Source: Phallusia mammillata (lineage: Eukaryota). From it: DNA of 64,000 bases. The notes under the pieces are model-generated. The model made no database searches. It had not been told where the DNA came from and saw only the letters and a list, made by a program, of their open reading frames with translations. Below are positions 31,936-64,000 of this stretch, piece by piece (position 1 is the first letter of the stretch; each line of letters opens with the position of its first letter). The stretch is from positions 19,530,001 to 19,594,000 of the forward strand of contig OZ281501.1 in NCBI GenBank assembly GCA_965637545.1. Direction: 5' to 3'. A program made the translations under genes and the position numbers.

Positions 31936-34624
31936 TTAGAAAAGTTGTTGCATGAAAAATCCAATGATCGCTAGGACCGATACAATCATCAGGTTTTGAA
32001 GTGGTCGATTGGAAGCATTCATCCCTGAAATAAGTAAGATGTTTTTTCAGTTACCAGTGGAAAGCAAAAACATGATTTATTACAATACCATAATATTGGA
32101 TTGCATACAATTGTCAGATGGGAGGTTAATTTTGTTCGGTTTATTAGAAGTGGTTTGAAAAGATCGTTTTTGTGGTGTTTGTAAATTACCCTAATTGTCG
32201 GTTTACCGGATAATTGGTTTTGAATTATTGTTTTTGCGTTTTTTTGGTGTTGGTAAGATACCTTGGTTGCAGCCGTCCAAGATGCATGTTTTGTTGCATT
32301 CCATAAAAGTTGTTTGGTCGATCACACTTTCTGAACATCCGTTGCCGATTTCAACATGCGCACAACCCCGGGTGATTGACCTTGTGTAACCTGTGCGACC
32401 GTGCAGAACTTGACCTGGAAATATTGTTGGTTGTCAGCATTAGGTGTTAAGGCATATCTCACTGGTTGCTATGGGCGACACGAACCTGTTAAATCGCCCG
32501 ACTTTCCGATATCGTGGTAGTAACACCGAGACATAAACGGCCAAACACATTGTGTGGGGGCGGGAGGGTTGAACAGACATTCGTCATAACCATCAGCAGT
32601 GCCGGACGATGAACATTGACTGCACGTGGGACGGTTGGCTGCAAATTTAAAAGTCATACTGTTAAGAGTATACAAGTAGTTTTGTGAACGAACACTATAT
32701 TGTGGTCAGTTTGATTTTGGCCATCGTAGGTTAATTACAGGAGTTATTTTGATTTTTGCGCTGAATAGAAAAACCGCAGAACTTACGCCACCCGATGTTA
32801 CATCCGTCGATTTGACAGCTTTCCTGACAAACTGTTTTGTAGCCGCTTGTTGTTCCTAGTTGGGTTTCTGTGCATTGCGCAGTGAGGGCGCTTGTTCCGC
32901 ATCCACGCTCGATCGAAACGAACTTGTATTCAGGCAAAGCTGGAAAAAAATATCGATGTAAAGTTGTGGATAGCGTTACTGAAACACCGCGCAAAAAACT
33001 TCCAAAAAAGCAAAAACATAGTTGCTAACGCTAGTGCTAAAGCGCTTGTAACTTTCTACCTTCGTTGGTGCTGAGGTCGGTCTTGTTGGAAGTGTAATAA
33101 GTCGTTGTCGCATAGCAGTGTGTGGACGCAGCGGGGCAGAGTGTCCTGCTGACAGTTGACGATGCGCAACTACCCGAGTCAATTACATCTGTGCACTGGA
33201 GGCAGTATAGAGCAGTTATTTCACTTCCATCCAATAATCCGTTTGCTGCGGAAATAAATTTTCAGTTATGCGTGTTGTGGACGTTTAGTTTTCATGTTGT
33301 GCAAGTTACGTGTTGCTGTGTTGCAGTTGTCAGTTGCGCACGTGCTTACGCATGTGTATTCGTTATATGCGCTGTACTGAGGGTCGGTAGGAGTGGAGAA
33401 AAAGCATTCATCTCTGTAGTTTAGCTCAGTAGCGCAGCCTCTCACAGCCCTGGTACGCACCACATTTTCACCTGCGCAAAAAAATCATTTTTTTTTCTGC
33501 TTGACCTCACATATCTTGCATCAACTTACTGTCGTCAAAGAGGGTCGTGTGAGTTGTGGTGCAGTAGTTTTGTGTTGTAAGTGGACAAGTGCTTCCTGTG
33601 GTTCTGCTTGCACAAGTGGAGTCAGTTTCTTCATCGCATTGAACACAACTACGAAATGCTGAGGTTGAAACTGTGCAAAAAATGTTTATCATTTAATTAA
33701 CAACTGGTAGGGGCTTTTCCAAATCTGCGCTTTATGTGTAGATGAAAAGGCAAAGCACTGATAAAGTTACCTGTGGTTGAACAGTCCGCTCCAGTGAATC
33801 CCGAGTTACACATGCAAGTTCCCGTAAAATAATCGCAGTTCCCTTGTCCTAAGTCGTTTGAGCAGTTGCTCTGGCAAACCTGAAGATTGTCTGCAATCGA
33901 AATATCCGAAGTTAATTTAGAATCATTCCTGCTTCGAAGTAATGTTTAACTCCATGTTTATGTTTTATTTATGACTGCACTAATTTCAAGTAATATTTAA
34001 AACAAGTAAAGTTAGGTCTTTTTGGGATTAGGACGAACTAACGGTTTGAGCTTACTTGTTGTCACCGTGTTGCAGTTGTTCGTTGTACATGATTGTTGGC
34101 ATGTTGTTCTTTCCACACCATTGTTGAATGATGTTGAGCATTTTGTGGTTGTTGGAGCACCAGTTTCAGTTGTAACTGGATCGCTTGATCCGTCATAACA
34201 TCCACGCTGGACACTCACCACTAAACCTGAACGGTAACACAAGCATGTAAAAATATTTTCGAAATGCTCTGGTTTTTAGGTCTTTATAATTTCGTCCGCA
34301 GCTAAAGGTTTGCAAATATGTGAAAGACTAACAGCAATTTGCGGCCTACCGTCATCTATCTCAAAAGTTGCGTGGCAATATGGAGAGCTTGTGGTTGGGC
34401 ACGTGATGAATGCGACGCTTGTAGCTCTGTCGTAACAATCGTTGTTGATGTAAGGCTCTCCGTTGAAGTAAGATTGGGAACAAAACCGACAGGTCCTTGT
34501 GATTTGTCCTGGTAAAACCCAATGCATCGAGTTAACTGGTGAACCAAAACACAAACATTTCATGTAACTCACCATTTACGAGCACCAAAGAAACCGCAAA
34601 GATTGTCAACAACAACAACTTCAT
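31936..34624 (-). CDS. Array copy A (divergent): signal peptide + LU1 + EGF + LU2 + LU3 + LU4 + GPI-type tail, about 521 aa
   Basis: Eleven exons: 34624-34573 (MKLLLLTIFAVSLVLVNG), 34535-34350, 34226-34056, 33890-33771 (EGF), 33670-33530, 33471-33310, 33245-33060, 32939-32787, 32638-32486 (donor least certain), 32414-32262 and 32024-31936 (GMNASNRPLQNLMIVSVLAIIGFFMQQLF*). All introns are phase 1. Each LU domain reads CxxC..C..C..C..RGC..C..CxxxCxxxxCN. Confidence 0.85.
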
Positions 34625-36033
34625 TTTTTCAAATAACCAGTTTACAACTATCACCTAATCCTACTTCTGCAAAACAAAACACATATTGCTATAAACCAGA
34701 ATAAGGTTATGAACAAAACGTTTCCACCAGCGCTCTGCCTTCGACAAAGTTCTGATTTATCTGTTTAATCACAAAATGCCTACATTTCTACTCCTCTGAC
34801 ACAAACTTGCATTTTCTGTCTACATTGAACTAAAACGTAGAAAATCGAAATGTTTGCTAGTACGAAAAATAAATTATCGCGCGTGCTGAGACTGCTCGGA
34901 CCCACCCTGCTTGCTTTCAATCTCCAAGCTTAAACTAAAGTGGTTATTTGTAATTACCTGAGTTGATCTTGCATTTATGTCATAAAGCAAGTTTTTTAAT
35001 CACAAACTCCGCGTTAGTATTTTGTGCGTCATAAAACCTCGTTGGTTTCAACACTCCCTGAATAAACTTGACTCTCGATTAGCATTAACTCTTGCACTAA
35101 TACTACTTTCACAACACTAGAATAACGTTTGCCAAGCCATGGTGTAAACTTGGTCACCACTATGGGTAGACAGAGAGATATGTTTTGCGCATACAACGTT
35201 GTGACAATGTATGAGAAGCTTACCTTCCAAGGTACCTGCAAAAAAATATTTAACCAAACTTAATATCATGAAATTATTCAGATTAAGTGCTTTTATATGG
35301 GGTCGCGTGAAACTTAAGGTGTTGTTTTGTTAAAGTATATTTTGAAATTACCCATGCATTTAGCAAGCATTTAGCTTTTTGACGGAAGATTAGCATTAAT
35401 GCTGTATTAAATAATGCTTATACATGTTGTTAGAATGTTATCACTGTGGTTCAGGTTTTTCGTTGGTGATGTTTACCATTTTAGTACATATGTTCGATGT
35501 TCAACATTTAGTATGTACAACGGACAATATTAAAATGTGTCGCTGAAATCTAAAGGCTTTAGCCCGAAAAACAAAAATGTGTTTGGCATACAGCCTACAA
35601 AACTGGTGCAATTATTGCGCACAGAAGATTAGCAACTTTATAATCTTCTAAACAAACTGCAAATTAGCTTTTCAGAACATTGGATACTACTGTTGGTTTA
35701 TTAAATTCAAACTTCTTGAACAAAATTATATATATAACATGCAATAATTACAATCTCAAAATTATAAAATGTGGGAAATTATCTACACTACGTGAACTAA
35801 CATTAGACAAACACATCAAATTATGTAAAATACACAGCAATGCACAAATAACAGAATTAAATTTTCATGCTCGTCGAAACTGAACAGTCCACTCCAGTTC
35901 TACATCCGGCAACAAATTATTCGCCTTCATTTGGAATCGGAGAGGTGGAAACAACAATTGATGGGGAAATTGGTGAATTACTGAAATTACAGTGAGTGGT
36001 TGGTGGGATATTTACACTGAGTTGTTTGGTCGG

Positions 36034-38394
36034 TTAAGCGGTTTGCTGAAGAAGGTAGCCGAGCATAGCGGTGACAAGGATCACCAACACATTCTGCACT
36101 GGAGAAGTTGATCCGCTGCCTGTAACAGAGCGAGAAACAATTGAAGTTCATCAATGAAGTTTTTCCCTAGTGATGCAATATGCACAGAAATCCCGACCAA
36201 CGCGCATAACCGATATTTTAAATCAATATTATTCGAATATTATTCTTTAATATTGTGGGTTGAACAGTTTTTATCTACAATTTTTGGTTTGCGTAACAGA
36301 ACTTAAATATAGCGCACCTTGGTTGCATCCATGTCCTGTGCAGGTTCTGTTGCACATTCTGTAATCGATTCCATCAACAGTAGTCTCGTTGCAGCCGTTG
36401 CCTTGATCGAAGAAAGCGCATCCTCTGACGACTTCTGAAGTAAATCGTTCCTTTGAACTTTCCGGACCTAAACATTTTCACAACATGTACATTTTGGCCC
36501 CCAACCATTGTGATGCTCCTAAAATTTTAGTTTGCTTACCGATTTCCCTGACGAAGCAGTATTGGTGAGCAGGATTGGAGCAGACAGTTGCCACTGGTGG
36601 GTTTTTAAGGCAAATGTCGTATCCAGCCACAAGTCCGTCAAAGCTAGATGAAGATCTTTGAGTACTGCATTGCACACATCTGCTTCGGGTTGCTGTAAAA
36701 AAAATTGTGAACAAACTTTATTTTCCAATCTAGAAAGTTTTAAGGACGGAAGTAAAACTTACGAAATCCTACGTTGCATCCGTCTTCAGTGCAGCTTTCC
36801 TCGCAAGTCACTCTCAATGCGCTGCTTGTTCCAAGTGTTGCGTTCGTGCAAGAATTCACAGATGTTGTGGAATCACGGCATCCGCGTTCAATTGATTCAA
36901 TCCAAACATCGGGATTAGCTGAACAACAATCCACAATAAAGCACAAAGAAAGTTTGATTCAAACACGAACCACGTACCTTGGTGTCGAAGATCGCCTTTT
37001 TCCTGGTAGTAGTAGATAATTTTTGAGTAGCACTGATTCGCTGCACCTTGGCAAAGTGTTCTTCCGGTTGCGGTGGTGCATGAGTGAGAATTTCCGGTTC
37101 CTGTACATTGTACGCACTGGAGAGCTCTATCTGCGGCCGCTACAACTCCATCAGCTGCAAACATTCACTTGTCAACCTCGCTGTTTTCCATATTATTGCT
37201 TGTGCTTACGTGTTCCTGTGTTGCAGTCATCGGTCTGACAAGTACTGGTGCAGGTCTGTTCAGTGTGGTCGGTGAATCTGGTGTCAGAAGGGTTAGAAAA
37301 CTCGCATCGGTCTTGGAAGTTGTTGGTTGTTGTGCATCCGCGGGTTATTCGGCTCGCCACCACGGCCCCAACTAAAACATACGTGAATATATGAAAACAT
37401 AAAAGTTTTTTTTTCATCTGGACTGATCAAAACTTTTGTTCACTTACCGGTATCATACAGGGTAGTTCTAGTTGTTGTGCAGTAAACATTTGCAGCCGGC
37501 TGATTAATAGAGCAAGCTGTTCCTGCTGTTTTTGTGGCACAAGTGCTGTCAGTTTCCTGGGAGCATTGGACGCAAGAACGACGGGTAATTGTCACTGTGT
37601 GTAGAAAGTTGGATAAATTTGTAATGGTCGCAAATCTGATGTTAATATTTACCTGCAGTTGTACAATTAGTTCCCATGAAATCTCCCACACAAACACACT
37701 GACCAGTGAAGTAATTGCAATATCCGTTGTTCATGCATGTTGATGCGCATGACATCAAGCTGTCTATAAGTTAATAGTATCTATATTATCTTGTAATGTT
37801 TAGCGAGGTGGTATCAACTTACTCGGTGCGATCGTGTTGCAGTTATTAGTTGTACAAATATGGTAGCAAGTTGTCTCTGCAACATTGCTGTTGGCGCCGA
37901 ATACTGTGTTACACTTTGGCGATGCTGGGACGGTGTTTATTGTCGTGTCAAAGTCGGCAGGAGTTTCAGCATCTTGTCTGCTTCTCATCATCAGGCTCAG
38001 AACGCCTAAACAGATTTATCAAGACATGCAACTTCAAGTCCAGTAACGTAATTCACTTATTCTCACCGTCGCTGAACACACTTCTGGTTAAGCAATATGG
38101 AGTCATAGATGAAGTTACAGTTGGTGGGGTTAAGTTAGTTGCGTTGTCGTAGCAATGGTTGTTGGTCTGAGTCTGGTCAAAGAAGCCCGTTGTCGTGCAC
38201 TCTATACATGACCTGTTTGTTTGGCCTAAAAAATGTCGTTGTTAGAAATTGTTAGATGATCTTCCACCGCATATTAATATTTTTCAAGAACCTCAGACAT
38301 TTACATTATTTAACTTTTATTAACCTTAAAACTTACCATTCACAGAAACGAAGCAGGCAACCGCCATCATCACACAAACTGTCGACAACTTCAT
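36034..38394 (-). CDS. Array copy B: 4xLU + EGF GPI-type surface protein
   Basis: ATG at 38394 (MKLSTVCVMMAVACFVSVNG), the same 11-exon phase-1 layout, and a last exon 36119-36034 reading GSGSTSPVQNVLVILVTAMLGYLLQQTA*. Confidence 0.85.
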
Positions 38395-39325: not shown

Positions 39326-39565
39326 CAGGGGTGTGCAGCCCGAGTCCAATTGTTCTATATTTTGAGCAGATTAATGCGTCCGGTGCTATTTTTCTCCGAC
39401 CTGACAATATGAGGCTAGAATCAAATGGGAATTTTACTTGTATTTGTTAAATAGGCATATTTGGTACGCAACAAGGTAAAATCACCTAATATTAAAGGTG
39501 TGGCCCGCGATCTAATTATTGTAACTGTATTTGGCCCCAAAGTGACAAAGGTCGCACATCCCCCG
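39326..39565. mobile_element. hAT-type MITE in the B-C spacer
   Basis: caggggtgtgc ... gcacatcccccg, with 8-bp flanks ctttaaaa / gtttaaaa. Confidence 0.65.
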
Positions 39566-40659: not shown

Positions 40660-43176
40660 TTACAACGAGAAGAATCGTTGCAAAGAATATCCGACGAGTG
40701 GAGGGAGAGACATCATCAGCAAATTCTGCAATGGCATCACAGACCCGTTGCCTGTCAACAAAACTTTTTTAAATACTCGATCAAGTGGGTTTCGCTTTTT
40801 ATTTAAAGCGGCAAATCATATTAAGTGCGACTTCATTTGTCGAAAACGCTTGGGAACGTAGAATTCTGGGTATTTATATTCTGAGGCAGTTGTTTGTTGC
40901 ATTTTATATTAGGACGCCTTTTTGTCCAGTTTTAATTGGAAGTGGATTCCTAAACTTTATTAAACTTTTCACAAATCAACTTTGGTGCAAAAAGACGCAG
41001 GAAAATGTGACTGGTTTACACTTGCATGTTTTATCGTAACACGCACCTTGGTTGCAACCATGTCCTGTGCAGGTTCTGTTGCACACCCGGTAATCGACCC
41101 CGTCAACAGTAGTCTCGTTGCAGCCGTTGCCCTGATCGAAGAAAGCGCAGTCTCTGACGACATCTCGGCTGAAACCTTCTCTGTCTTCACCTGAACCGAA
41201 AAAGTTTGGGTCAGAAACGGCACTTACTGTTTTAACCAACAAGTTTGCTTACCGGTTTCCCTTACGAAGCAATATTGTTCAGCAGGGCTTTCGCAGACAG
41301 TTGCCACTGGTGGGTTGTTCAGGCAAATGTCGTATCCAGCCACAAGTCCGTCAAAGCTGGACGAAGATCTTTGAGTCCTGCATTGCACACAGCTGCTTCG
41401 GTTTGCTGGGGGAAAGTTAAGGTAAACATCTAAACTGGGATCAGTCCTAAAGCGCCGATGCAGACCAGTACAATAAAATATTTTTAAACTAGAACGACCG
41501 AAGTGAAACTTACGAAATCCGACGTTGCATCCGTCTTCAGTGCAGCTTTCCTCGCATGTCACTCTCAATGCGCTGCTTGTTCCAAGTGTTGCGTTAGTGC
41601 AAGAGTTTACAGATGTTGTGGAATCACGGCATCCGCGTTCAATTGATTCAACCAATACATCGGGATCAGCTGAACAACAATCCACAATAAACACAAAGGA
41701 AGTTTGATTCAAACACGAACCACGTACCTTGGTGGCGAAGATCGCCTTTTTCCTGATAGTAGTAGATAATTTTTGAGTAGCACTGATTCGCGGCACCTTG
41801 GCAAAGTGTTCTTCCGGTTGCGGTGGTGCATGAGTGAGAATTTCCGGTTCCTGTGCATTGTACGCAATAGAGAGCTCTATCTGCGGCCGCTACAACTCCA
41901 TCAGCTGCAAACATTCACTTGTCAACCTCGCTGTTTTCCATATTATTGCCTGTGCTTACGTGTTCCTGTGTTGCAGTTATCGGTCTGACAAGTACTGGTG
42001 CAGGTCTGTTCAGTGTGGTCGGTGAATCTGGTGTCAGAAGGGTTGGAAAACTCGCATCGGTCTTGGAAGTTGTTGGTTGTTGTGCATCCGCGGGTTATTC
42101 GGCTCGTCACCACAGCCCCAACTACAAGAAAGCGAATAAAATGGTTGAAAATCGTGCTTACCAGGAACAGAATATACTTTAATTTGCCTTTCACAGCTTC
42201 TCATTTTTGAAATAACTTACCGGCATCGTACAGGGTAGTTCTAGTTGTTGTGCAGTAAACATCTGCAGCCGGCGAGTCAATAGAGCAAGCTGTTCCTGCT
42301 GTTTTTGTGGCACAAGTGCTGTCAGTTTCCTGGGAGCATTGAACGCAAGAACGACGGGTAACTGTCACTGTGTGTAGAAAGTTGGATAATTTTGTGATGA
42401 TCGCAAATCTGATGTTGATATTTACCTGCAGTTCCACAACCAGTTCCACTGAAACCTGAATTGCAAACGCACTGACCAGTGAAGTAATTGCAATATCCTT
42501 GGTTTGTCGTGCATGTTGATGCGCATGACATCAAGCTGTCTGTAAGTTGCAACAGGTGATTTATCTTGTGATGATAAGTAATAATGTTGTAAGGTATCAA
42601 CTTACTTGCTGTGATCGTGTTACAATTGTCAGTTGTACAAGTATGGTAGCAAGTTGTCAGTTCAATTCCGTTGCCGAATACTGTATTACACTTTGGCGAT
42701 GTTGGGACGGTGGTTATTGTGGAGTCAAAGTCACTTGATGCATCTTGAACGCTTCTTTCCACAGATCTTAGGTTTCCTTAACAACAATATTCTGTCAATA
42801 CCTGCACTTAATCAACCAAATGTAGCCACTTAATCTTACCGTCGGCGATTGTGAACGTGGTGAGGCAATATGGTGTTGTGACTGTTGTCAATGACGCTGT
42901 TGGTAAGTTGGTCGTGTTGTCATAGCAATGGTTGTTGGTCTGAACTTCGTCATAAAACTGAATAGTAAGTGAGCATATTCTGCACATTCTTGTGGTCGTT
43001 GTTTGGCCTAGAGAGAAAGGAAATTTTACATTATGAGAACACCTTGCCCCGCTTGTAAATATTTCTCAAGAAACTTAGGCATTTACATTATTTAACTTTT
43101 GTTAAACTTAAAACTTACCATCGACCGAAACGAAGCAGGCAACCGCCAACATCACACAAACTATCGACAACTTCAT
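40660..43176 (-). CDS. Array copy C: 4xLU + EGF GPI-type surface protein
   Basis: ATG at 43176. LU1 begins RMCRICSLTIQFYDEVQTNNHC, the EGF reads SCASTCTTNQGYCNYFTGQCVCNSGFSGTGC, and the tail is GNGSVMPLQNLLMMSLPPLVGYSLQRFFSL*. Confidence 0.83.
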
Positions 43177-44542: not shown

Positions 44543-45773
44543 GTCTTTACCGTAAGCTAAAGTGCAAAAACATAATAATTATTGCACTTATAAATATTGC
44601 TATAGTATTACTAAATAGCTGATAATACAAACCGCACCTTTCCAACATCTTGAAGCTTGACCTAAAAATGTTATCAATATGAACGCAACCGGTTTAAAAA
44701 TTGTGGATAGAGAATGAACTTTACTACACGACATAACAGCTCTATGTTGGTCTGGCGTATATATCCGTCTGTTAAAATCCTCCTTAATAATTTCAGGAAC
44801 ATCGAAGCATGCGATCAATTTTCAGACAAGATACTAATTGAACTTACAGGGTATTCCGTCTTGAGTTTTGTCGTTACCAGGAACATGTTTGTTTGTTACA
44901 CAAAACATGGGAAGAATTTTTCTAGGTTACTTCTCAGCCACCGTTTTTCAATTCAAAAAGGCTGAATTTTTCCGCTACATGCTGTGATAGTTTTAACTCA
45001 ATTAACTCATGCCTAAATGGTGGCGCATGCTTTTCTCGTTGTCGTGGAAACAAGCGGCAAGTTTTCATGCAAGATGCGATTCAGGGATAAACCACAAGAT
45101 GGGCCATGTCCAGTGTTTCTCAAAATGGGCGCCAAATCATTTACGTGGCTGTTCGCAATAATATAGGGGGTCCGGAGGTTAAATGGATTATTCGGGGCCC
45201 TGAAATAAATCTTCGAACTTAATACAGGGACATGGACAATTTGTTCACATAATACTTTAGGTAAAATGTTTGTTTTTTTAAAAAAACATTTCTTTTTAAA
45301 ATTCGAACTTGGTCAAACAGTGTCAGTGTTTGAGCCTAAATTGTCCGATTTTTTTCGTTGTTTTAGGCCGTTAGAGAAAGTGTATTGCCATCACCAGCGG
45401 TTTAGAGGGGTAATATGTGATAGAAACTTTTGAGAAACACTGGTCTGGTCACTAAACGAATGCGTGCAGTATTGGGTAAAAAATATTTAATCTGCCAGAT
45501 ACCGGTTGGAATAAATCACGCTACAACATGCAAAATGTACAACATGATACGCTTTTGCAATAAACATGGAAACTTTGTATTTGATGACATGCAGATCATA
45601 TTCAAAGTCGCGCCAACTGTCAAAGTCAGCAATCATGCAAAGAATATAAACTGCTTCAATAAATTTACAGTAAAGGTTTATAACCGGAGTTTAACACTAC
45701 ATAATATAATCTACATCATGCAAATCACACAGTTTAAACGTCACCCAGCAAACAAACAAAATCTCTGTCCATT

Positions 45774-48641
45774 TTACAACGAGAAGAATCGTTGCAAGGA
45801 ATATCCGATGAGTGCAGGGAGAGACATCATCAGCAAACTCTGCAATGGCATCGCAGACCCGTTGCCTGCAAACAAAACTTTGTTTAAATACTCGACCAAG
45901 TGTGTTTCGTTTACTTCATTTGTCGAAAACGCTTTTGAACGTAGAATTCTGGGTATTTATCTTCTGAGGCAGTCGTTTGTTGCATTTTATATCAGGACGC
46001 TTTTTGGTCCAGTTCTTATTCAAAGTGAATTCTTAAAGTTTATTAAACTTTTCACAAATCGACTTTGGTGCAAAAAGTCACAGAAAAAGTAACTGGGTTA
46101 CACCGGTATGTTTTATGGTAACACGCACCTTGGTTGCAACCATTCCCTGTGCAGGTTCTGTTGCACACTCGGTAATCGACCCCGTCAACAGTAGTCTCGT
46201 TGCAGCTGTTTCCTTGGTCGAAGAAAGCGCATCCTCTGGTGACGTCTCGGCTGAAACCTTCTCTGTCTTCACCTGAACCGCGAAAGTTTGGGTCAGAAAT
46301 GTCATTTTCCACTTTCATTGACAAGTTTGCTTACCGATTTCCCTGACGAAGCAATATCGATGAGCAGGGCTTGTGCAGACAGTTGCCACTGGTGGGTTGT
46401 TGAGGCAAATGTCGTATCCAGCCACAAGTCCGTCAAAGCTGGATGAAGACCTTTGAGTACTGCAGTCCACACATCTGCTGCGGTTTGCTATAAAAAGATT
46501 GTCAACAAACTTTATAATTTCCAAACTGGAAACAGCGCTGAAGCGTTTATGCAGAACAACGATCACGGCACACTTATTATATGTATAAACCATAATACGC
46601 CAGGCCCATTGAACGAGTCTTATCGAATCAGCCGGTCACCAAGCATTCCCGTATATGACAAGACATAAATTAGAGAAATCTAGCATGCAGTGGGATTCGA
46701 ACCCATGTCAGGGGCCATTTTCACGTCTTGCGCTTTATCAACTGTTCTAAACAGGCTACGTGTCGAGCCATAATTCAATCGGTCTGGCGTACAGTGAAGT
46801 ATTTCCAAACTAGAAAGGTTTAACGACCGAAGTGCAACTTACGAAATCCAACGTTGCATCCGTCTTCAGTGCAGCTTTCCTCGCATGTCACTCTCAATGC
46901 GCTGCTTGTTCCAAGTGTTGCGTTAGTGCAAGAGTTCACAGATGTTGTGGAATCACGGCATCCTCGTTCAATTGATTCAATCATAACATCAGGATTAGCT
47001 GAATAGCAATCCACGTTAAAGCACAAAGAAAACAGTAAAACCAACGGACGATAAAATTCTTGCTAGAACAGAATACTAAGGTTTTTATCGTCCTTTGGTT
47101 TTACTCTAATAAAAAAAAGCAAACAGTGATCGTCAGTTTAAGTCGTGCTGTGATGGTTTTCATCGATTACTAAAGTTGTCATTTTGAAAGCACAACAATT
47201 CAAACACGAACCACGTACCTTGGTAGCGAAGATCGCCTTTTTCCTGGTAGTAGTAGATAATTCTTGTGTAGCACTGATTCGCTGCACCTTGGCAAAGTGT
47301 TCTCGCGGTTTGAGTGATGCATGAAGAACCTCCGGTTCCTGTGCATTGTACGCACTGGAGAGCTCTATCTGCGGCCGCTACAACTCCATCAGCTGCAAAC
47401 ATTCACTTGTCAACTTCGCTGTTTTCCATATTATTGTTTGTGCTTACGTGTTCCTGTGTTGCAGTTATCGGTCTGACAAGTGCTAGTGCAAGTCTGTTCA
47501 GTGTGATCGGTGAATCTGTTGTCAGAAGGGTTGGAAAACTCGCATCTGTCTTGGAAGTTGTTGGTTGTTGTGCACCCGCGGGTTATTCGGCTCGTTACCA
47601 CGGCCCCAACTACAACAGACGTGAATAAAAATATTAAAGTTTTTTTCCGTCTGAGCTTGTCACAACATTTGCTTTTGTGCATTTTTAAAATAACCTACCG
47701 GCATCATACAGGGTAGTTCTAGTTGTTGTGCAGTAAACATTTGCAGCCGGCATATTAATAGAGCAAGCTGTTCCTGTTGTTTTTGTGGCACAAGTGCTGT
47801 CAGTTTCCTGGGAGCATTGGACGCAAGAACGACGGGTAACTGTCACTGTGTGTAGAAAGTTGGATAAATTTGTGATGGTTGCAAATCTGATGTTGATATT
47901 TACCTGCAGTTCCACAATCAGTTCCACTCCAATCTCCCGCACAAACGCACTGACCAGTGAAGTAGTTGCAATATCCGTTGTTCATGCATGTTGATGCGCA
48001 TGACATCAAGCTGTCTGTAAGTTGCAGCAATAAGTGATTTATCTTGTAATGATAAGTAATAACGTTGTCATATGTCAACTCACTTGCTGCGATCGTGTTG
48101 CAGTTGTTAGTTGTGCAAATATGGTAGCAAGTTGTCATTTCAATTCCATTGTTGAATGCTACTTCGCATTTTGGCGATGCTGGGACGGTTGTTATTGTGG
48201 AGTCAAAGTCACTTGCAGCATCTTGTCTGGTTCTCGTCATCATGCTCAGAACACCTAAACAGATTTGTCAAAACATGAAACTTCAAGTTTACTAACTCAA
48301 TTCACTTAATCTCACCGTCGCGGAAAACGCTCGTGGTTAAGCAATATGGAGTCATAGATGAAGTAGCAGCTGGTGGGATTAAGTTAGTTGCGTTGTCGTA
48401 ACAATAGTTGTCCGTCTGAGTCTGGTCAGCATACAAGCCCGTTGTCGCGCACACTATGCATGATCTGTTTGTTTGGCCTGAAAGAAATGTCGTATTGTTA
48501 GACGATCTTGCGTCGTGTAACTAACATTTCTCAAGAAACTCAGACATTTGCATTATTTATCTTTTATTAAACTTAAAACTTACCATTGACAGAAACGAAG
48601 CAGGCAACCGCCAACATCACACAAACTATCGACAACTTCAT
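45774..48641 (-). CDS. Array copy D: 4xLU + EGF GPI-type surface protein
   Basis: ATG at 48641. LU1 begins RSCIVCATTGLYADQTQTDNYC, and the tail is GNGSAMPLQSLLMMSLPALIGYSLQRFFSL*. Introns in the LU3/LU4 region are enlarged by insertions. Confidence 0.83.
46540..46790 (-). mobile_element. tRNA-derived SINE-like insertion in the LU3b-LU4a intron of copy D
   Basis: The minus strand reads catGGGTTCGAATCCcactgcatgc, a B-box at about 46693-46703. A homologous insert sits at the same intron in F and G and is absent from B, C and E. Confidence 0.45.
47034..47106. repeat. Small palindromic insertion unique to copy D (LU3a-LU3b intron)
   Basis: agtaaaaccaacggacgataaaa ... ttttatcgtcctttggttttact inverted arms. 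Confidence 0.6.
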
Positions 48642-49775: not shown

Positions 49776-50103
49776 CAGGGGTGTGCAGCCTGCAGCCCAC
49801 CGGCCAAATACGGCCCTTGATTAAAGGTTGTGCAGTCCGCAGTGACGCTTGGTTTTCAAATGTACTGGCAAACGAGTCCAGTTAATATATATTTTTAAGC
49901 AGATTAATGCATCCGGTGCTATTTTTCTCCGACCTGACAATATGTGGCTAGAATCAAATGTGTATTTTACTTGTAATTGTTAACTCAATATAGGCATATT
50001 TGGTATGCAACAAAGTAAAATCACCTTGTGTTAAAGGTGCGGCTCGCGATCTAATTATTGAAATTGTATTTGGCCCCAAAGTGACAAAGGTTGCACACCC
50101 AAT
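49776..50103. mobile_element. hAT-type MITE in the D-E spacer, homologous to the one at 39326
   Basis: gtttaaaa|caggggtgtgcagcc ... ggttgcacaccc, at the same position within the duplicated spacer. Confidence 0.6.
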
Positions 50104-51165: not shown

Positions 51166-53635
51166 TTACAACGAGAAGAATCGTTGCAAGGAATATCCGA
51201 TGAGTGCAGGGAGAGACATCATCAGCAAACTCTGCAATGGCATCACAGACCCGTTGCCTGCAAACAAAACTTTGTTTAAATACTTGGCCAAGTGGGTTTC
51301 GTTTTTGTTGAAGCATTAAACTTTTGTAAAGTGCGACTGTGGCGGTTGGACACGTCCCAGGTGCGAAGTAATCACGAGTAACATATTCAGGTGCAATCAA
51401 TAAAAGCAGAGTTTGATCGCTAATACTTGTGCGTACGGATCGAAAACCCAAATAGTTAAACTTTATTACAAACCTTATTTCTGAACAGTGGCGTTTTAAA
51501 TTCTTACTGCCTAGTTGAGACACCGGTTTGTTTTATCGTAACACGCACCTTGGTTACAACCATGTCCGGTGCAGGTTCTGTTGCACACTTTGTAATCGAC
51601 CCCGTCAACAGTAGTCTCGTCGCAGCTGTTGACCTGGTCGAAGAAAGAGCATCCTCTGACGACTTCTCTGCTGAAACCTTCTCTGTCTTCACCTAGACCA
51701 AGAAAGTTTGGGTCAGAAACGTCACTTTTAACTTTCACTGACAAGTTTGCTTACCGGTTTCCCTGACGAAGCAATATCGATGAGCAGGGCTTGAGCAGTC
51801 AACTGCAATTGATGGGTTGTTCAGGCAAACGTCGTATCCAACCACAAGTCCGTTGATGTTGAGAGTAGTTCCCCCAGTGGATGCCGCGACGGATCTTTCA
51901 GTACTGCATTGCACACATCTGCTGCGGTTGGCTGCAAAAAGATTGTCAGCAAACATTAGTATTTCCGAATTAGAAACGTTTTAACGACCGAAGTGAAACT
52001 TACGAAATCCTACGTTGCATCCGTCTTCAGTGCAGCTTTCCTCGCATGTCACTCTCAATGCGCTGCTTGTTCCAAGTGTTGCGTTAGTGCAAGAGTTCAC
52101 AGATGTTGTGGAATCACGGCATCCGCGTTCAATTGATTCAATCATAACATCGGAATCAGCTGAATAGCAATCCACAATAAAGCACAAAAAAAGTTTGATT
52201 CAAACACGAACCACGTACCTTGGTAGCGAAGATCGCCTTTTTCCTGGTAGTAGTAGATGATTCTTGAGTAGCACTGATTCGCTGCACCTTGGCAAAGTGT
52301 TCTGTCGGTTCGAGTGTTGCATGAGGAACCTCCGGTTCCTGTGCATTGTACGCACTGGAGAGCTCTATCTGTGGCCGCTACAACTCCATCAGCTGCAAAC
52401 ATTCACTTGTCAATTTCGTTGTTTTCCATATTATTGCTTGTGCTTACGTGTTCCTGTGTTGCAGTTATCGGTCTGACAAGTACTGGTGCAAGTCTGTTCA
52501 GTGTGGTCGGTGAATCTGCCGTCAGAAGGGGCGGAAAACTTGCATCTGTCTTGGAAGTTGTTGGTTGTTGTGCATCCGCGGGTTATTCGGCTCGTCACCA
52601 CGGCCCCAACTACAAGAAAGCGAAAGAACTAGTTTAAAATCGTGTTTAACGGGAACAGAACATACTTGAATTTTGCTTTTCACAGCTTCTCATTTTTGAA
52701 ATGACTTACCGGCATCGTACAGGGTAGTTCTAGTTGTTGTGCAGTAAACATTTGCAGCCGACATATTAATAGAGCAAGGTGTTCCTGCTGTTTTTGTGGC
52801 ACAAGTGCTGTCAGTTTCCTGGGAGCATTGGACGCAAGAACGACGGGTAACTGTCACTGTGTGTAGAAAGTTGGATAAATTTGTGATGATTGCAAATCTG
52901 ATGTTGATGTTTACCTGCAGTTCCACAATCAGCTCCACTCCAATCTCCCACACAAACGCACTGACCAGTGAAGTAGTTGCAATATCCGTTGTTCATGCAT
53001 GTTGATGCGCATGACATCAAGCTGTCTGTAAGTTCCAGCAATAAGTGATTTATCTTGTGTTGTTTAGTGATAATGTTGTCAGGTATCAACTTACTTGCTG
53101 TGATCGTGTTACAATTGTCAGTTGTGCAAGTGTGGTAACAAGTTGTCAGTTCAACTCCTTGGCTAAATACTGTGTTGCATTTTGGCGATGTTGGGACGGT
53201 TGTTATTGTGGTGTCAAAGTCACTTGATGCATCTTGTCTGCTTCTGTCCACAGATCACAGGTTTGCTTAACAAAATTCTGTCAATACCTGCACTTATCAA
53301 CTAACTGTATCCTCCACTTAATTTACCATCGGCGATTGTGAACGTGGTGAGACAATGTGGAGTGACGGATGATTGCAACATAGATGCTTCATTTGTCGAG
53401 TTGTCATAGCAGTGGTTGTTGTTCTGGTCTTGGTCATAGTGCATGGAATTCGAACATACTCTGCACATTCTGTCCACATTTGTTTGGCCTGGAAATAAAT
53501 TAATAAACAACAATTGAACAAAACTCCTGTAACGTGGGCATTCGTATGATTCATCTTTTGTCAAACTTAAAACTTACCATTGACAGAAACGAAGCAGGCA
53601 ACCGCCAACATCACACAAACTATCGACAACTTCAT
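51166..53635 (-). pseudogene. Array copy E: full exon set but with an in-frame TGA in exon 3 (probable null allele or pseudogene)
   Basis: Exon 3 reads ttaag|CA AAC CTG TGA TCT GTG (TGA at 53257-53255), where copy C has ttaag|GA AAC CTA AGA TCT GTG. I found no nearby AG that restores frame past the stop. Confidence 0.65.
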
Positions 53636-56602
53636 TATTATCACTTATTTAATGTTTTTTAATTAAACACAAAGTTTCCTACAACCTGAAAAACAGAACA
53701 ACAACACTTAGTGGTGGAAGGCGGATTCTTTCAAACAAAACTAAATCAGGCTCTTAGTTTTTTTTGCTATTAATCTAAAACTGCAAAACAAGTATAATTT
53801 TGACAAGTTTTGACCGTTTTCCGTCGAATCTGAAAGTAAAAATATCGGTGTCAGTAAAAACTATTTTTTTTCGCTCTGGCAGAATTAGGAATAAAAAATG
53901 TTTTACTGATTTTTTTATTGCAAGATTTTTGTCTCATGCTGGTAATAAATTTTATTTCCCTGAACGTCCAAGGGTCGTCTAATTTTCCCTGTTACAAAAA
54001 AAATTTCCTTATGTTGCTTAACAATGTGTTTATTTTATTCGATAACTGGTGTTGTTAAAATTGGTGTACACACTTTTTTGGGTTTTTTATATGTTTTTAT
54101 GACTTCTTTTGTAATATCTGCTTCAGCCAAAACTGATGGATTTAAACAGGTGACGTAATTGGTTGATTGCAAGCAGCTGCAAATTTTGTTTTTACAAATT
54201 TTTAGTTTAGTATGAACGCTGAGTAAAAACGAGCACATGTTTTGAACAGATCCGTTTAAATGCGGTTGCTTGACTTTCTTCAGGTTTGTAACACCAATAT
54301 TGTGAGGTTTGAATGCTGCCGCTGTGTATGGACAAATTGATATACGTTTACTGTTGCCATCAGTTACATGGCGTTTTGAGTTTAGATTGCTTGCCAGATT
54401 TGCATCTTTAACGTTAAGTTTTTGAATGTTTGGTGACCAAATAAAAGTTACCCTAGTGGTTTGCAAAACATGAGAGTTTTTTTCTGCGTGTTTTCTTCGC
54501 GAGTAATGTTCTGGTTTTATACGCAAACTCTCTGAAGCAAAATTTTGTTTGGGCACTTTCAGTTGAACGGTTAATTGTTAATATTATTGCTGTGGATTTC
54601 TTACTCGGGTGATTCGTTTTAAAGATCCGGGTTTTATGCGAATTTGAAAACGTTCTCGGGAAACAGAGCATCGTTAGCAGCGTCATGTCCAGACTAAACT
54701 ATGTTGTGGTGCTTAATACGGGTTGGTTTAAATATCACTTCAGCTACCCTAGCAGGTGAAACAAGGAATTTTGTGAGGTTTAAAGCTTTTTGAACTTGTT
54801 TCTACTCTATGATCTGAATGACTATTAGTTTGTGTGAGGTCATGTCTAGTATTACGGTGCGGCGAGATTTTAGTTTTGGTTTGGTTGCGCTAAAAATTAA
54901 GCGGAGCAAAAAAGGGTGTGAAGTTTCACGGATGAGTGATTACGTCACGGTTGGCATGGTAACGACTGGTAGCATTAGGGTTTTGTCATGCGGAACGTGA
55001 CGTTAAAACATTTCCAACCCGTGCACAAAGTTGCAAAGTTACACTAAAGATTTTTGCTGCAATTTATTTTTAAACTTTGAATTGACCGCTCGATACAAAT
55101 TTTGAAAAATGTGGAAATTTATTTAGCAACAGGATATTCGGTCAATATGTTTGCTCCGGCGAACGCTGTATTTTTCCCGTACAAATGTTATTGCATGTGA
55201 TTAAAACCGCTTAAAAATTTTTAGTCAACCAGTATTACTCGCATAAATGTTGACACACGCAGCCATGTTTAATTTGAAATGGCACGTAAGTTGTCAAACA
55301 GCTTTTAAAAACTTGCCGAGCCTTGATATGCAGTTTGTAACTGAAACAATAGACAATCAAAGTTGCCAAAAATGAAAACTCTCATACGATTTAATTCGAC
55401 GCATTTCGCAACTCTAGGAAATTTATCTGCGAAATATATTGAAAAGGTATAGATGCGTAAAAAGTGTTGTCGTTAGAAAACGGTGTGAAACTTGTTACAT
55501 CAGGTTTGAAGGTATACGTCGTAAATTAAAGTATGAAAACATAAAAATTATGGTAAAATGACCAAACAGTTGATGACACAAAGCGCGTCTTCCAGGAGCT
55601 TTATCTGAAAATGCTGTCAATACGAACCCAACCGATTTGAAAGTTGTAACAGAAAATCAGGTTATAAATGAAATAACTATATGTAATTCTGCTTACGAAT
55701 TAGTTTTCTGGATTATTTCATTAACATTAGATAACAAAGTTAATTTGCCGAAAAGTTACTGGACTAAACAACAAGGTATTTCGTGTTTCAGTTTTGTGGT
55801 TATCAAGGAACATGGTTGTTTTACAAAGCATGGGAACATTTTTTTTACTTTATTAAACGACGATGCATTTTGCCTTTACGTGCTGTGATAGTTTTAACCC
55901 ATTTAACCCATGCCTAAAGGGTGGCGCATGCTTTTCTCGTTGTCGTGGAAACAAGCGGCAAGTTTTCATGCAAGATGTGATTCAGGGTTTAAACCACAAA
56001 ATTGTTTGTCTAGTGTTTCTCAAAATGAGCGCAAACGCATTCATGGGGCTGTTCGCAATAATGGTCGGGCGCTGGAATAAATCTGGGCAGTTGGAACCCT
56101 AAGCAGGGACAAATGAAATTCGTTCACATATCCATTTAAACATCCAACATGAGCAACTTGGGTAAATGTATTTGTAAAATCGATTCCTACGGAAATTCGA
56201 TCTTGGTCAACCGGTGTCAGTGTATAAACCGTGGTTAAGTTTTTTTAAAGAAACTGTTTTGCAAATGGCAAGCAGTTTAGGGTAGTGATAAGGAAAACTG
56301 TTTAAAAACACTGGTTTGGTCAATAATAATTAAATGCGTGCAGTTAACGCTACAACATGCAAAATGTACAACATTGTACGCTTGTGCAATAAATATGGAA
56401 AATTTGTATTTGATGACATGCAGGTCACATTCAGAATTGAGCCAACTGTAAAAGTCAGCAATCATGCAAAGAATAGAAACTGCTTCGATAAATTTACAGT
56501 GAAGGTTTATAACCGGAGTTTAACACTACAAAATATAATCTACATCATGCAAATCACACAGTTAAAACGTCACCCAGCAAACAAACAAATTCTCTGTCCA
56601 TT

Positions 56603-59262
56603 TTACAACGAGAAGAATCGTTGCAAGGAATATCCGATGAGTGCAGGGAGAGACATCATCAGCAAACTCTGCAATGGCATCGCAGACCCGTTGCCTGCAA
56701 ACAAAACTTTGTTTAAATACTCGGGTTTCGCTTTTTAGTTGAAGCCGCAAGTCAAGTTAAGTGCGACTTAATTTGTCGAAAACGCTTGAAAGCGTAAAAT
56801 TCTTGGTATTTATTTTCTGAGGCAGTTGTTTCTTGCATTTTATATCAGGACGCTTTTTTGTCTAGTTCTTATTGATAGTGGAATTTTAAACTTTATTAAA
56901 CTTTTCACGATACAATTCTGGTGCAAAAGGCGCAGGAACTGTGACTGGTTTACACTTGTATGTTTTATTTTAACACGTACCTTGGTTGCAACCATTTCCG
57001 GTGCAAGTTCTGTTGCACATTTTGTAATCGACCCCGTCAACAGTTGTCTCATTGCAGCCGTTGCCCTGATCGAAGTAAGCGCAGCCTCTGGTGACTTCTC
57101 GAGTGAAACCTTCTCTGTCCTCACCTGAACCGAGAAAGTTGGTGTTTAGAACAGCCATTTTCAACTTTCACTGACAAGCTTGCTTACCGGTTTCTCTGAC
57201 GAAGCAATATTGTTCAGCAGGGCTATCGCAGCGTGCTGCCACTGTTGGGTTGTTGAGGCAAACGTCGTATCCAGCCACAAGTCCGTGGTAGTTGGTTAAT
57301 TCTCTTTGAGTACTGCATCGCACACATCTGCTACGGTTGGCTGGAAAAAGTTAAGATAAACATAAGATCTAAACTGGTATCAGTTTTAAAGCGTCGTTGC
57401 AGACCAGCAATCACGGCACACTTATAAATCACACGCCAGTCGCCAGGCCTATTGAACCAAACACTCAGCATTCCGTCATATGGCTAGGCGTAGGCTAGAA
57501 AAATCTGGCATGCGGTGGGATTTGAACCCATGTTCGCATCTTGCGCTCGATCAAGGCTCAGTGGCGAGCCTAAATACAAGGTCTGGACGTACAATTAAAT
57601 ATTTTTCGAACTGGAAACGTTTTGACGACGAAAGTGCAACTTACGAAATCCGACGTTGCATCCGTCATCAGTGCAGCTTTCCTCGCATGTCACTCTCAAT
57701 GCGCTGCTTGTTCCAAGTGTTACGTTAGTGCAAGAGTTCACAGATGTTGTGGAATCACGGCATCCGCGTTCAATTGATATAATCCAAACATCGGGATTAG
57801 CTGACCAACAATCCACAATAAAGCACAGAGAAAGTTTGATTCAACCACGAACCACGTACCTTGGTGGCGAAGATCGCTTTTTTCCTGGTAGTAGTAGATA
57901 GTTTTTGTGTAGCACTGATTCGCTGATTCGCGGCAAAGTTTTCTCGCGGTTGCATCAATGCATGTGTGGCCATTGCCTGTTCCTGTACATTGTACGCACT
58001 GGAGAGCTTTATCTGCGGCCGCTACAACTCCATCAGCTGCAAACATTCACTTGTCAACCTCGCTGTTTTCCATATTATTGCTTGTGCTTACGTGTTCCTA
58101 TGTTGCAGCCGTCGGTCTGACACGTGCTGGTGCAAGTCTGTTCAGTGTGGTCGGCGAATCTGGTGTCAGAAGGGGCGGAAAACTCGCATCTGTCTTGGAA
58201 GTTGTTGGTTGTTGTGCATCCGCGGGTTATTCGGCTCGTTACCACGGCCCCAGCTACAACATACGGGAATAAAAGTAATAAAGTTTTTTTGTCTGAGCTT
58301 GTCTCAACTTTTGCTTTTAATATTGCCTTACCGGCATCGTACAGGGTAGTTCTAGTTGTTGTGCAGTAAACATTTGCAGCCGGCGAGTTAATAGAGCAAG
58401 CTGTTCCTGTTGTTTTTGTGGGACAAGTGCTATCAGTTTCCTGGGAGCATTGGACGCAAGAACGACGGGTAACTGTCACTGTGTGTAGAAAGTTGGATAA
58501 ATTTGTGATGATTGCAAATATGCTGTTGATATTTACCTTCAGTGCAATTAGTTCCCATGAAATTTCCCACACAAACGCACTGACCAGTGAAGTAATTGCA
58601 ATAACCTCCGTTCATGCATGTTGATGCGCATGACAACAAGCTGTCTGCAAGTTGCAACAAGTGAATTATCTTGTGATGTTTAGTGATAATGTTGTCAGGT
58701 GTCAACTTACTTGCTGCGAGAGTGTTGCAGTTGTTAGTTGTACAAGTGTGGCGGCAGGTAGTTACTTCAACTCCGTTGCCGAATACTACTTCGCATTTCG
58801 GGGATGCTGGGACGGTGGTTATTGTCGTGTCAAAGTCACTTGCAGCATCTTCTCTGGTTCTCGTCATCATGCTCAAAACACCTAAACAGATTTATCAAAA
58901 CATGAAACTTCAAGTTCACTAACTCAATTCCTTTATTCTCACCGTCGCGGAAAATGCTCGTGGTTAAGCAATATGGAGTCATAGATGAAGTAGCAGGTGG
59001 TGGGGTTAAGTTAGTTGCGTTGTCGTAGCAATGGTTGTCGGTCTGGTCTTCGTCGTAAAAACCCGTTGTCGCGCACTCTATGCATGATCTGTCTGTTTGG
59101 CCTGAAAAAATTTCGTATTGTTAGACGACCTTGCGTCGTGTTTAACATTTCTCAGAAAACTCGGACATTTACATTATTTAACTTTTATTAAACTTAAAAC
59201 TTACCATTGACAGAAACGAAGCAGGCAACCGCCAACATCACACACACTATCGACAACTTCAT
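56603..59262 (-). CDS. Array copy F: 4xLU + EGF GPI-type surface protein
   Basis: ATG at 59262. LU1 begins RSCIECATTGFYDEDQTDNHC, LU3 has HTCIDATARKLCRESANQC, LU4 has RCVRCSTQRELTNYHGLVAGYDVC, and the tail exon is intact. Confidence 0.83.
57400..57600 (-). mobile_element. SINE-like insertion in copy F, homologous to those in D and G
   Basis: The minus strand reads catGGGTTCAAATCCcaccgcatgc, with shared flanks gtacg(t)ccagacc and ataagtgtgccgtgat. Confidence 0.4.
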
Positions 59263-62155: not shown

Positions 62156-64000
62156 TTACAACGAGAAGAATCGTTGCAAGGAATATCCGATGAGTGCAGG
62201 GAGAGACATCATCAGCAAACTCTGCAATGGCATCACAGACCCGTTGCCTGCCAACAAAACTTTGTTTAAATACTCGACCAAGTGTGTTTCGTTTCGTAGT
62301 TAAAGCCGCAAATCACATTAAGTGCGACTTCATTTGTCAAAAACGCTTTTGAACGTAGAATTCTGGGTATTTATATTCTGAGGCAGTTGTTTATTGCATT
62401 TTATATCAGGACACTTTTTTGTCCAGTTCTTATTCAAAGTGAATTCTTAAAGTTTATTAAACTTTTCACAAATCGACTTTGGTGCAAAAAGTCACAGAAA
62501 AAGTAACTGGGTTACACCGGTATGTTTTATGGTAACACGCACCTTGGTTGCAACCATTCCCTGTGCAGGTTCTGTTGCACACTCGGTAATCGACCCCGTC
62601 AACAGTAGTCTCGTTGCAGCTGTTTCCTTGGTCGAAGAAAGCGCATCCTCTGGTGACGTCTCGGCTGAAACCTTCTCTGTCTTCACCTGAACCGCGAAAG
62701 TTTGGGTCAGAAATGTCATTTTCCACTTTCATTGACAAGTTTGCTTACCGATTTCCCTGACAAAGCAATATCGATGAGCAGGGCTTGTGCAGACAGTTGC
62801 CACTGGTGGGTTATTTAGGCAAATGTCGTATCCAGCCACAAGTCCGTCAAAGCTGGATGAAGACCTTTGAGTACTGCAGTCCACACATCTGCTTCGGGTT
62901 GCTGTAAAAAGATTGTCAACGAACTTTATAATTTCCAAACTGGAAACAGCCCTGAAGTGTTTATGCAGAACAGCGATCACGGAATACTTATAAACCATAA
63001 TACGCCAGCCCCATTTAAGGAGACTTATCTAATCAGCCGGTCACCAAGCATTCCCATATATGAAAAGACATAGGCTAGAGAAATCTAGCATGCAGTGGGA
63101 TTCGAAGCAATTTCAGGGGCCATTTTCACGTCCTGCGCTCTATCAACTGTTCTACACAGGCTCAGTGTCGAGCCTTAATTCAATCGGTCTGACGTACAGA
63201 GAAATATTTCCAAACTAGACAGTTTTAACGACCAAATTGAAACTTACGAAATCCGACGTTGCATCCGTCTTCAGTGCAGCTTTCCTCGCATGTCACTCTC
63301 AATGCGCTGCTTGTTCCAAGTGTTGCGTTAGTGCAAGAGTTCACAGATGTTGTGGAATCACGGCATCCGCGTTCAGTTGATATAATCCAAACATCGGGAT
63401 TAGCTGAACAACAATCCACAATAAAGCACAGAGAAAGTTTGATTCAACCACGAACCACGTACCTTGGTGGCGAAGATCGCCCTTTTCCTGATAGTAGTAG
63501 ATAATTTTTGAGTAGCACTGATTCGCGGCACCTTGGCAAAGTGTTCTTCCGGTTATGGTGTTGCACGAGTGACCATTTCCGGTTCCTGTGCATTGTACGC
63601 ACTGGAGAGCTCTATCTGCGGCCGCTACAACTCCATCAGCTGCAAACATTCACTTGTCAACCTCGCTGTTTTCCATATTATTGCTTGTGCTTACGTGTTC
63701 CTGTGTTGCAGTTATCGGTCTGACAAGTGCTGGTGCAAGTCTGTTCAGTGTGGTCGGTGAATCTGGTGTCAGAAGGGTTGGAAAACTCGCATCGGTCTTG
63801 GAAGTTGTTGGTTGTTGTGCATCCGCGGGTTATTCGGCTCGTCACCACGGCCCCAACTACAAGAAATCGAAAGAACTAGTTTGAAATCGTGTTTACCGGG
63901 AACAGAACATTATTTAATTTCTTCTTCACTCTCAGTTTTGAAATAACTTACCGGCATCGTACAGGGTAGTTCTAGTTGTTGTGCAGTAAACATCTGCAGC
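62156..64000 (-). CDS. Array copy G (5' part outside the window): end of LU2 through LU3, LU4 and GPI-type tail
   Basis: The same exons as B-F from LU2a onward. The LU4 exons translate identically to copy D, and the stop is at 62158-62156. Confidence 0.8.
62970..63200 (-). mobile_element. SINE-like insertion in copy G, near-identical to that in D
   Basis: gcttcgaatcccactgcatgctagatttctc, with surrounding sequence closely matching 46600-46790. Confidence 0.45.

Follow-up and report, generated by a model that had tools for sequence, protein, structure and literature searches.

A tandem array of six complete genes (A to F) and a partial seventh (G) lies head to tail on the minus strand between positions 31936 and 64000 of a 64 kb stretch of Phallusia mammillata DNA, hereafter the window, the end of which truncates G. 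The genes were predicted from the sequence. Each complete gene has 11 exons, separated by introns that are all GT-AG and in phase 1, and encodes a product of ~500 amino acids (aa). In order, the exons encode a signal peptide, the two halves of a first cysteine-rich Ly6/uPAR (LU) module (LU1a and LU1b), an EGF module, three further LU modules (LU2a, LU2b, LU3a, LU3b, LU4a, and LU4b), and a tail that resembles a glycosylphosphatidylinositol (GPI) signal, with every cysteine-rich module divided between two exons. Gene E was read base by base, its exon ends being taken directly from the sequence, and serves as the reference model. The other units were modeled by a script that takes the best phase-compatible open AG...GT interval for each E exon; this yielded all 11 exons for A, B, C, D, and F, and exons 6 to 11 for G, which is cut within exon 5.

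A six-frame scan of the window for C-x3-C-x4-C-N gave 27 matches, all on the minus strand between 32298 and 63737 (four in each of A to F and three in truncated G), and 0 elsewhere in the 64 kb. Stop-to-stop distances are 4098 bp from A to B and, going from B through G, successively 4626, 5114, 5392, 5437, and 5553 bp. At the protein level, B to G are 77 to 96% identical to one another and 44 to 48% identical to A. An earlier note on this DNA had described seven minus-strand paralogues, a spacing of 4.6 to 5.6 kb among B to G, and genes with a signal-peptide exon, an EGF exon between modules 1 and 2, and a last exon of small residues followed by a hydrophobic segment. The six complete genes plus truncated G, and the distances just given, bear this description out, and the three exon features are found in each complete gene.

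Coordinates of the array genes and of the exons of reference gene E in the window
Feature	Position	Strand	Description
Gene A	31936..34624	-	508 aa, 11 exons; divergent paralogue; 10 Cys in 4/4 LU modules
Gene B	36034..38394	-	502 aa, 11 exons
Gene C	40660..43176	-	502 aa, 11 exons; LU4 has RDC, not RGC
Gene D	45774..48641	-	498 aa, 11 exons
Gene E	51166..53635	-	506 aa, 11 exons; reference model
Gene F	56603..59262	-	497 aa, 11 exons
Gene G	62156 to beyond 64000	-	exons 6-11 whole, exon 5 partial
E exon 1	53578..53635	-	start codon and signal peptide (MKLSIVCVMLAVACFVSVN/G)
E exon 2	53327..53488	-	LU1 first half; most diverged exon among B-F; lacks Cys4
E exon 3	53095..53232	-	LU1 second half; displaced acceptor ..ACAAG/AT; lacks the RGC cysteine (Cys6)
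E exon 4	52915..53025	-	EGF domain, six Cys
E exons 5 and 6	52856-52710, 52609-52448	-	LU2, most conserved module
E exons 7 and 8	52392-52219, 52159-52004	-	LU3
E exons 9 and 10	51931-51755, 51692-51549	-	LU4, 10 Cys
E exon 11	51166..51257	-	GPI-signal-like tail: G-NGS, spacer, hydrophobic stretch, stop

To find relatives, 1.84 billion representative proteins were searched exhaustively with HMMER. The query was LU2 of gene F (58093-58476, minus strand); alone among the window LU modules it reads through with no stop, as its intron (58331-58254, 78 nt) is in frame and stop-free; the read-through includes 26 intron-derived residues. Twelve proteins matched at an E value of ≤1e-3. The eight longer ones were identified as seven ascidian proteins and one bacterial protein, four short matches of 80 to 96 aa were not looked up, and no vertebrate protein was found among these matches. 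The bacterial match, a cadherin-repeat protein of 1814 aa (P0003), was set aside as a false positive arising from sequence composition. A profile search contributed two more proteins from Ciona and one from Styela. The relatives comprise LOC100181470, LOC100177378, LOC100182096, LOC108949271, LOC100184585, and LOC100177746 of Ciona intestinalis, CAB3262712.1 of Phallusia mammillata, and LOC120329939 of Styela clava.

The window proteins align over their whole length with proteins of Ciona intestinalis, Ciona savignyi, Phallusia mammillata, and Styela clava that are RefSeq entries or derived from cDNA, at 30 to 41% identity (35 to 41% for the matches with E values down to 2e-118). Gene A is 39% identical to Ciona P0024 over residues 1 to 508 (E value, 2e-118), and genes B and E reach E values of ~1e-90 with annotated ascidian proteins. 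Because of this full-length agreement, the spliced models are, as judged from the alignments, no chance chains of open reading frames (ORFs). Exact mapping of three Ciona proteins to the genome showed that each is encoded by 11 phase 1 exons, the boundaries of which fall at domain positions matching those of the array genes. The ascidian relatives, including those of Phallusia and Styela, share the architecture and cysteine counts of the window genes; they differ in that the B to G clade, with its reduced LU1, is specific to the lineage of the window genome.

By sequence search, the family appears restricted to ascidians. The lineage specificity proposed earlier therefore stands insofar as only ascidian relatives were found, but it does not extend to a single species, as Ciona has tandem clusters too. 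The proposal of an undescribed family also needs qualification: a literature search on the Ciona loci, accessions, and automatic names found no paper on an ascidian family with four LU domains and an EGF module, but its members are already in databases as predicted proteins, named "uncharacterized" or misnamed "G surface protein," "comC," or "cell death abnormality protein 1." HrSMLP1 (PMC6916515), considered in that search, is DD3-3-like and unrelated to the array family.

Domain identity was examined with Pfam, which was run exon by exon on the window LU pieces, each exon being half a domain. E exon 4 matches EGF_2 with 25.6 bits, above the gathering score of 22.1, and has the EGF cysteine pattern C-x3-C-x5-C-x7-C-x-C-x8-C. 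The LU exons give partial matches. E exon 7 (LU3a) aligns with positions 2 to 40 of the 82 in UPAR_LY6 (E value, 1.8e-4; 22.3 bits, below the cut-off of 24.8), and E exons 6 (LU2b) and 8 (LU3b) align with positions 46 to 86 and 47 to 86 of the 86 in QVR (E values, 0.009 and 0.045). The QVR scores are 17.4 and 15.2 bits for these half-domains and 12.9 bits for read-through LU2, below the cut-off of 27.3 bits, which Ciona homologue P0007 passes with 32.9 bits.

Structure prediction points more directly to the fold. An AlphaFold2 model of window LU2, built from the gene F read-through and an alignment of 41 family LU sequences, has a mean predicted local distance difference test score (pLDDT) of 82 and a predicted template modeling score (pTM) of 0.72. 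Foldseek matches this model to uPAR and C4.4A with a probability of 0.99 to 1.00. When Foldseek's own matches were realigned with VIA-align, the Z score was 9.8 for C4.4A (86 residues aligned; root mean square deviation, 2.8), 9.5 for uPAR domain 1, 8.8 for GPIHBP1, 8.6 for LYPD6B, 8.3 for TEX101, and 7.9 for both CD177 and a three-finger toxin (MT7 chimera), and the first 48 PDB entries in the resulting list are all three-finger folds. For a model of a full-length Ciona homologue, LU-domain proteins account for all of the top 35 PDB matches; multi-LU receptors rank first, beginning with the CD177 ectodomain (5e-9) and uPAR (~1e-8) and continuing with C4.4A and TEX101. A look-alike search of the ESM Atlas returned only low-scoring LU-family clusters (≤0.79), none with the architecture of the array proteins. 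The gene structure is also that of Ly6 genes, which typically have the signal peptide on its own exon and the LU domain spread over two exons (PMC4839075); the array and Ciona genes both show this layout. The LU modules of the array are thus predicted to adopt the Ly6/uPAR three-finger fold. Both domain assignments in the earlier note agree with these results, the EGF module through its above-threshold Pfam match and the LU modules through the predicted folds and partial Pfam matches. Of the checks it had suggested, the Foldseek search retrieved three-finger folds, and the profile search succeeded for EGF_2 and fell short of threshold for UPAR_LY6 and QVR on the window pieces.

In an alignment of 41 LU modules, window LU2 included, ten Cys columns and the Asn after Cys10 are invariant, and the Arg before Cys6 is nearly so. 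The ten-Cys pattern with its RGC motif, which the earlier note had ascribed to every module, is present throughout A and in modules 2 to 4 of B to G, except that module 4 of C has RDC. It does not hold for LU1 of B to F, which has eight Cys and no RGC. Missing are Cys4, from exon 2, and Cys6, the RGC cysteine, from exon 3. In gene A and in all database homologues, LU1 has ten cysteines, the exception being Ciona P0022, the first module of which failed to match the pattern. The disulfides of CD59 (3-26, 6-13, 19-39, 45-63, and 64-69) represent the canonical pattern (PMC4839075). Cys4 and Cys6 correspond to the two partners of the CD59 19-39 bridge and are encoded in separate exons. As both missing residues are partners in the canonical pattern, LU1 of B to F is predicted to have lost one whole core disulfide (4-6).

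The loss of Cys6 can be traced to the exon 3 acceptor, which shifted downstream and left the old segment intronic. The displaced acceptor AG is conserved in B to F (..AAG/AT). Upstream of it, in the E intron at ~53233-53250 (minus strand) and at the same place throughout B to F, lies an untranslated remnant of the 5' part of the ancestral exon 3. The remnant reads ..SVDRSRQ, compared with ..SVQRGCY in gene A, and is preceded by an in-frame stop.

In a maximum-likelihood tree, the window genes group with the Phallusia mammillata protein (support, 96/96), A is sister to this protein (92/86), and B to G form a clade with support of 100/100 and a stem length of 0.96. G and D are 96% identical over 292 aligned residues, and units E and F share 84% identity along 4.7 kb, spacers included. 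B to G arose by tandem duplication of whole units after splitting from an A-type gene. The tree and the whole-unit similarity also back the earlier description of the family as expanding.

Divergence is uneven along the genes. The synonymous rate (dS) ranges by exon from 0.06 in LU2a to 0.87 in LU1a. In exon 2 (e.g., 53327-53488, 48316-48477, and 42840-43007), two LU1a types alternate along the array, with B, D, and F carrying one and C and E the other. Nucleotide identity in LU1a is 86 to 90% among B, D, and F, 73% between C and E, and 58 to 65% between the types, compared with 91 to 98% in neighboring exons. The alternation raised the idea of a two-gene duplication unit, which is unsupported, as the similarity between units E and F extends from end to end. 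The last exon of gene B (36119-36034, minus strand) is likewise distinct, with 56 to 57% nucleotide identity to exon 11 of C to G; it keeps the small-residue site, and its tail is more hydrophobic. The two LU1a types, the distinct exon 11 of B, and the dS mosaic together suggest that gene conversion has partly homogenized B to G, acting strongly on LU2 to LU3 and weakly on LU1.

The coding sequence is under purifying selection. The pooled ratio of nonsynonymous to synonymous rates (dN/dS) is 0.24 to 0.90 across exons and <1 in every one. Open frames, canonical splice sites, and the structural cysteines are intact in 6/6 complete genes. Because these features are kept and every exon shows a ratio in this range, the array genes are constrained and are not decaying copies.

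The protein ends have the form of a signal peptide and a GPI signal. At the N terminus, the 13-residue hydropathy maximum is 2.7 to 3.0 in A to F. At the C terminus, small residues (NGS, SGS, or NAS) directly after LU4 are followed by a short spacer and 13 to 14 hydrophobic residues, with no cytoplasmic tail; the tail exons start with G-NGS, G-SGS, or G-MNAS, and the 13-residue hydropathy maximum there is 1.3 to 2.9 across genes. A hydropathy scan found no internal segment hydrophobic enough to span a membrane, and the Ciona and Phallusia proteins have the same end layout. Ser and Thr make up 22 to 25% of residues, and each protein has 4 to 8 N-glycosylation sequons. From the layout of their ends, the proteins are probably anchored at the cell surface by GPI. 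The GPI-anchored surface protein of the earlier note is thus matched in the form of both ends, while anchoring and surface location themselves are read from sequence features.

Several features neighbor the array. ORFs of 69 to 220 aa on the plus strand are conserved in several units (45430-46092, 51110-51319, and 56334-56738), lying antisense to exon 11 and to the sequence that immediately follows it. Those at 45430-46089 and 56334-56735 have no significant Pfam match, nor do the intergenic ORFs of 83 to 220 aa, antisense exon 11 ORFs included. The spacer ORFs are read as noncoding spacer, the antisense ones being most simply a by-product of recent duplication. At 12728-15352 on the plus strand, the window contains exons of a UPF3 (Smg4_UPF3) homologue. 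In Ciona, at least five same-strand family copies lie at 6.06 to 6.11 Mb and a pair at 6.66 to 6.68 Mb of one chromosome, with another copy at 1.55 Mb. On Ciona chromosome AP043575.1, at ~6.06 to 6.10 Mb (L001, 15169-20609; L003, 1901-3712), LU-type cysteine signatures indicate further family copies, annotated as products of 157 to 218 aa or not annotated. UPF3 and a B4GALT gene directly precede the Ciona pair P0024/P0013, and since UPF3 exons are also present in the window, the array is probably the positional counterpart of this pair; microsynteny is thus conserved, although the array is oppositely oriented in the window. Synteny with the Ciona LOC100177746 locus, beside a PhyH gene, amounts to one weak exon match (E value, 0.007).

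Among vertebrate GPI-anchored proteins, CD177 has up to four LU domains, uPAR (PLAUR) has three, and C4.4A (LYPD3) and TEX101 have two. Like the array proteins, of which they are the best structural matches, these have consecutive LU domains after a signal peptide, an exon pair for each LU domain, and a GPI-type signal at the end, and their genes occur in clusters (PMC4839075). They differ in that their LU domains are contiguous (PMC6337849), whereas the array proteins have an EGF module between LU1 and LU2. The array proteins also have a Cys8-Cys9 spacing of C-x3-C instead of CC, and no sequence homology to the vertebrate proteins is detectable.

The first domain of vertebrate multi-LU proteins has eight Cys as well, being without the 7-8 disulfide (PMC6337849). 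Gene A, in contrast, keeps ten Cys in LU1, and B to F lack the 4-6 pair instead. Since a different disulfide was lost, the resemblance between the eight-Cys first domains of B to F and vertebrates is parallel and not inherited. A chordate-wide study reports that three-LU genes begin with lungfish and lists none in cartilaginous fishes through coelacanths (PMC6337849). Because they have no detectable sequence homology, lost a different disulfide, and carry an inserted EGF module, the array genes fall outside the uPAR/CD177/C4.4A/TEX101 lineage, and the ascidian family most likely represents a multi-LU lineage of separate origin.

The fold and GPI-anchored layout are also shared with insect Ly6/Quiver (QVR) proteins and with single-domain Ly6 proteins (Lynx1, SLURPs, LYPD6, and GPIHBP1), and the QVR and UPAR_LY6 profiles are the best Pfam matches of the array modules, at below-threshold scores for the window pieces. 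These proteins differ in having one LU domain of ~80 to 100 aa and no EGF module. A 2026 survey of invertebrate LU proteins lists domains that occur together with LU, among them Kunitz, C1q, fibrinogen-like, Ig, IGFBP, LRR, and GPS; EGF is nowhere mentioned in it, and amphioxus is its only chordate, with no tunicates sampled. The earlier note knew of no characterized LU-EGF-LU family, and none was found in this survey or elsewhere in the searchable literature.

Taken together, we consider it reasonably probable that the array consists of tandem functional paralogous genes of an ascidian-restricted family of ~500 aa secreted-pathway glycoproteins that act as GPI-anchored, nonenzymatic binders. 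After removal of the signal peptide, the last ~25 residues would be exchanged for a GPI anchor at the small-residue site (N/G/S) directly after LU4. The protein would then be held at the outer leaflet, LU4 lying close to the membrane and LU1-EGF far from it. By analogy with uPAR, CD177, C4.4A, and TEX101, the most likely mode of action is that of a multi-LU binder held by GPI, the finger loops and inter-domain surfaces of which would engage protein partners in the membrane or the extracellular space. Differences among the paralogues would lie mostly in the membrane-distal LU1 and to a smaller extent in EGF and LU4. A further idea draws on urokinase, the EGF-like growth factor domain of which sits inside the three LU domains of uPAR. 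The array EGF module could be a built-in ligand-like element that packs into a cavity of the flanking LU domains, a tunicate "receptor with tethered EGF," so that displacement or exchange of EGF in trans would mediate cell-cell or cell-matrix recognition and the rapidly diverging LU1 and EGF would set paralogue specificity. We regard this extension as speculative and improbable.

Several observations weigh against GPI-anchored LU binders. The window LU pieces all score under the Pfam gathering scores, four of the five full- or near-full-length homologues scanned have no LU-family Pfam match, and a profile of the 41 family LU modules finds no match among PDB sequences at E values up to 1. The sequence link to classical Ly6/uPAR proteins thus appears weak, and in the absence of a PDB sequence match the connection rests on the fold, the cysteine framework, and the gene structure. 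On the structural side, LU1 of B to F is without a core disulfide, the full-length Ciona homologue was modeled with low confidence (pLDDT, 59), and the 26 intron-derived residues form a low-confidence loop in the LU2 model, its sole poorly defined part. The tail of C to G is moderately hydrophobic, with a 13-residue hydropathy maximum of 1.3 to 1.7, and ligand binding is proposed by analogy.

The array could instead encode secreted or shed matrix components of the tunic, egg coat, or mucus. Cleavage of the C-terminal peptide or shedding of the anchor would release them, and their modules, rich in Ser/Thr and Cys, would be structural or protective. The Ser and Thr content, the sequons, and the moderately hydrophobic C to G tail are compatible with such a role, and secreted LU proteins are well known (PMC13719153). 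However, the window genes and their Ciona and Phallusia relatives all retain the arrangement typical of a GPI signal, a hydrophobic C-terminal peptide after small residues, and the closest structural matches are GPI-anchored receptors, so that we hold a matrix role to be rather unlikely. It is very improbable that the array represents decaying duplicates or gene prediction artifacts with no protein product. The weak polypyrimidine tract at the intron 2 acceptor of B to G would favor such a reading, but the intact frames, splice sites, and cysteines, the dN/dS below 1 in every exon, and an exon structure identical to that of annotated Ciona genes all speak against decay.

The uneven divergence bears on a different alternative, that this is a self/non-self or gamete recognition locus in which positive selection on exposed LU1 fingers diversifies paralogues or alleles. 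LU1a is by far the most diverged exon and occurs in two types along the array, copy number has expanded, and other LU proteins act in fertilization, as reported for Bouncer (10.1101/354688) and TEX101/LY6K (PMC4804279). Moreover, dN/dS in sliding windows rises above 1 in the second half of EGF (1.5) and in the LU2 loops (2.6), and only there, although these short windows rest on 6 to 17 synonymous changes pooled over nonindependent pairs. In LU1a, dS rises with dN (0.87 versus 0.29; ratio, 0.33), which indicates older divergence and not positive selection, and close pairs within LU1 give ratios of 0.32 to 0.52. Positive or diversifying selection was thus not established by the per-exon and sliding-window analyses, and the recognition role suggested in the earlier note gains no support from them. 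A review of ascidian fertilization also makes no mention of uPAR, Ly-6, Bouncer, or SPACA4, and a recognition locus of this kind seems to us a poor prospect next to a constrained family of GPI-held binders.

The LU fold is known, and homologues of these genes are in databases; what appears new from the sequences is an independently assembled multi-LU family of GPI type, with an EGF insert and at least seven tandem copies here. The prevailing view is that multi-LU receptors such as uPAR and CD177 arose late, within the vertebrates. An ascidian-wide family with four LU domains would show that tunicates independently assembled multi-LU GPI proteins by shuffling phase 1 exons, with an EGF insert that we have not found described and with repeated expansion in tandem arrays. 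LU1 of B to F offers a natural experiment on how the three-finger fold tolerates loss of a core disulfide, and the family adds uncharacterized surface protein candidates in Ciona, a genetically tractable model.

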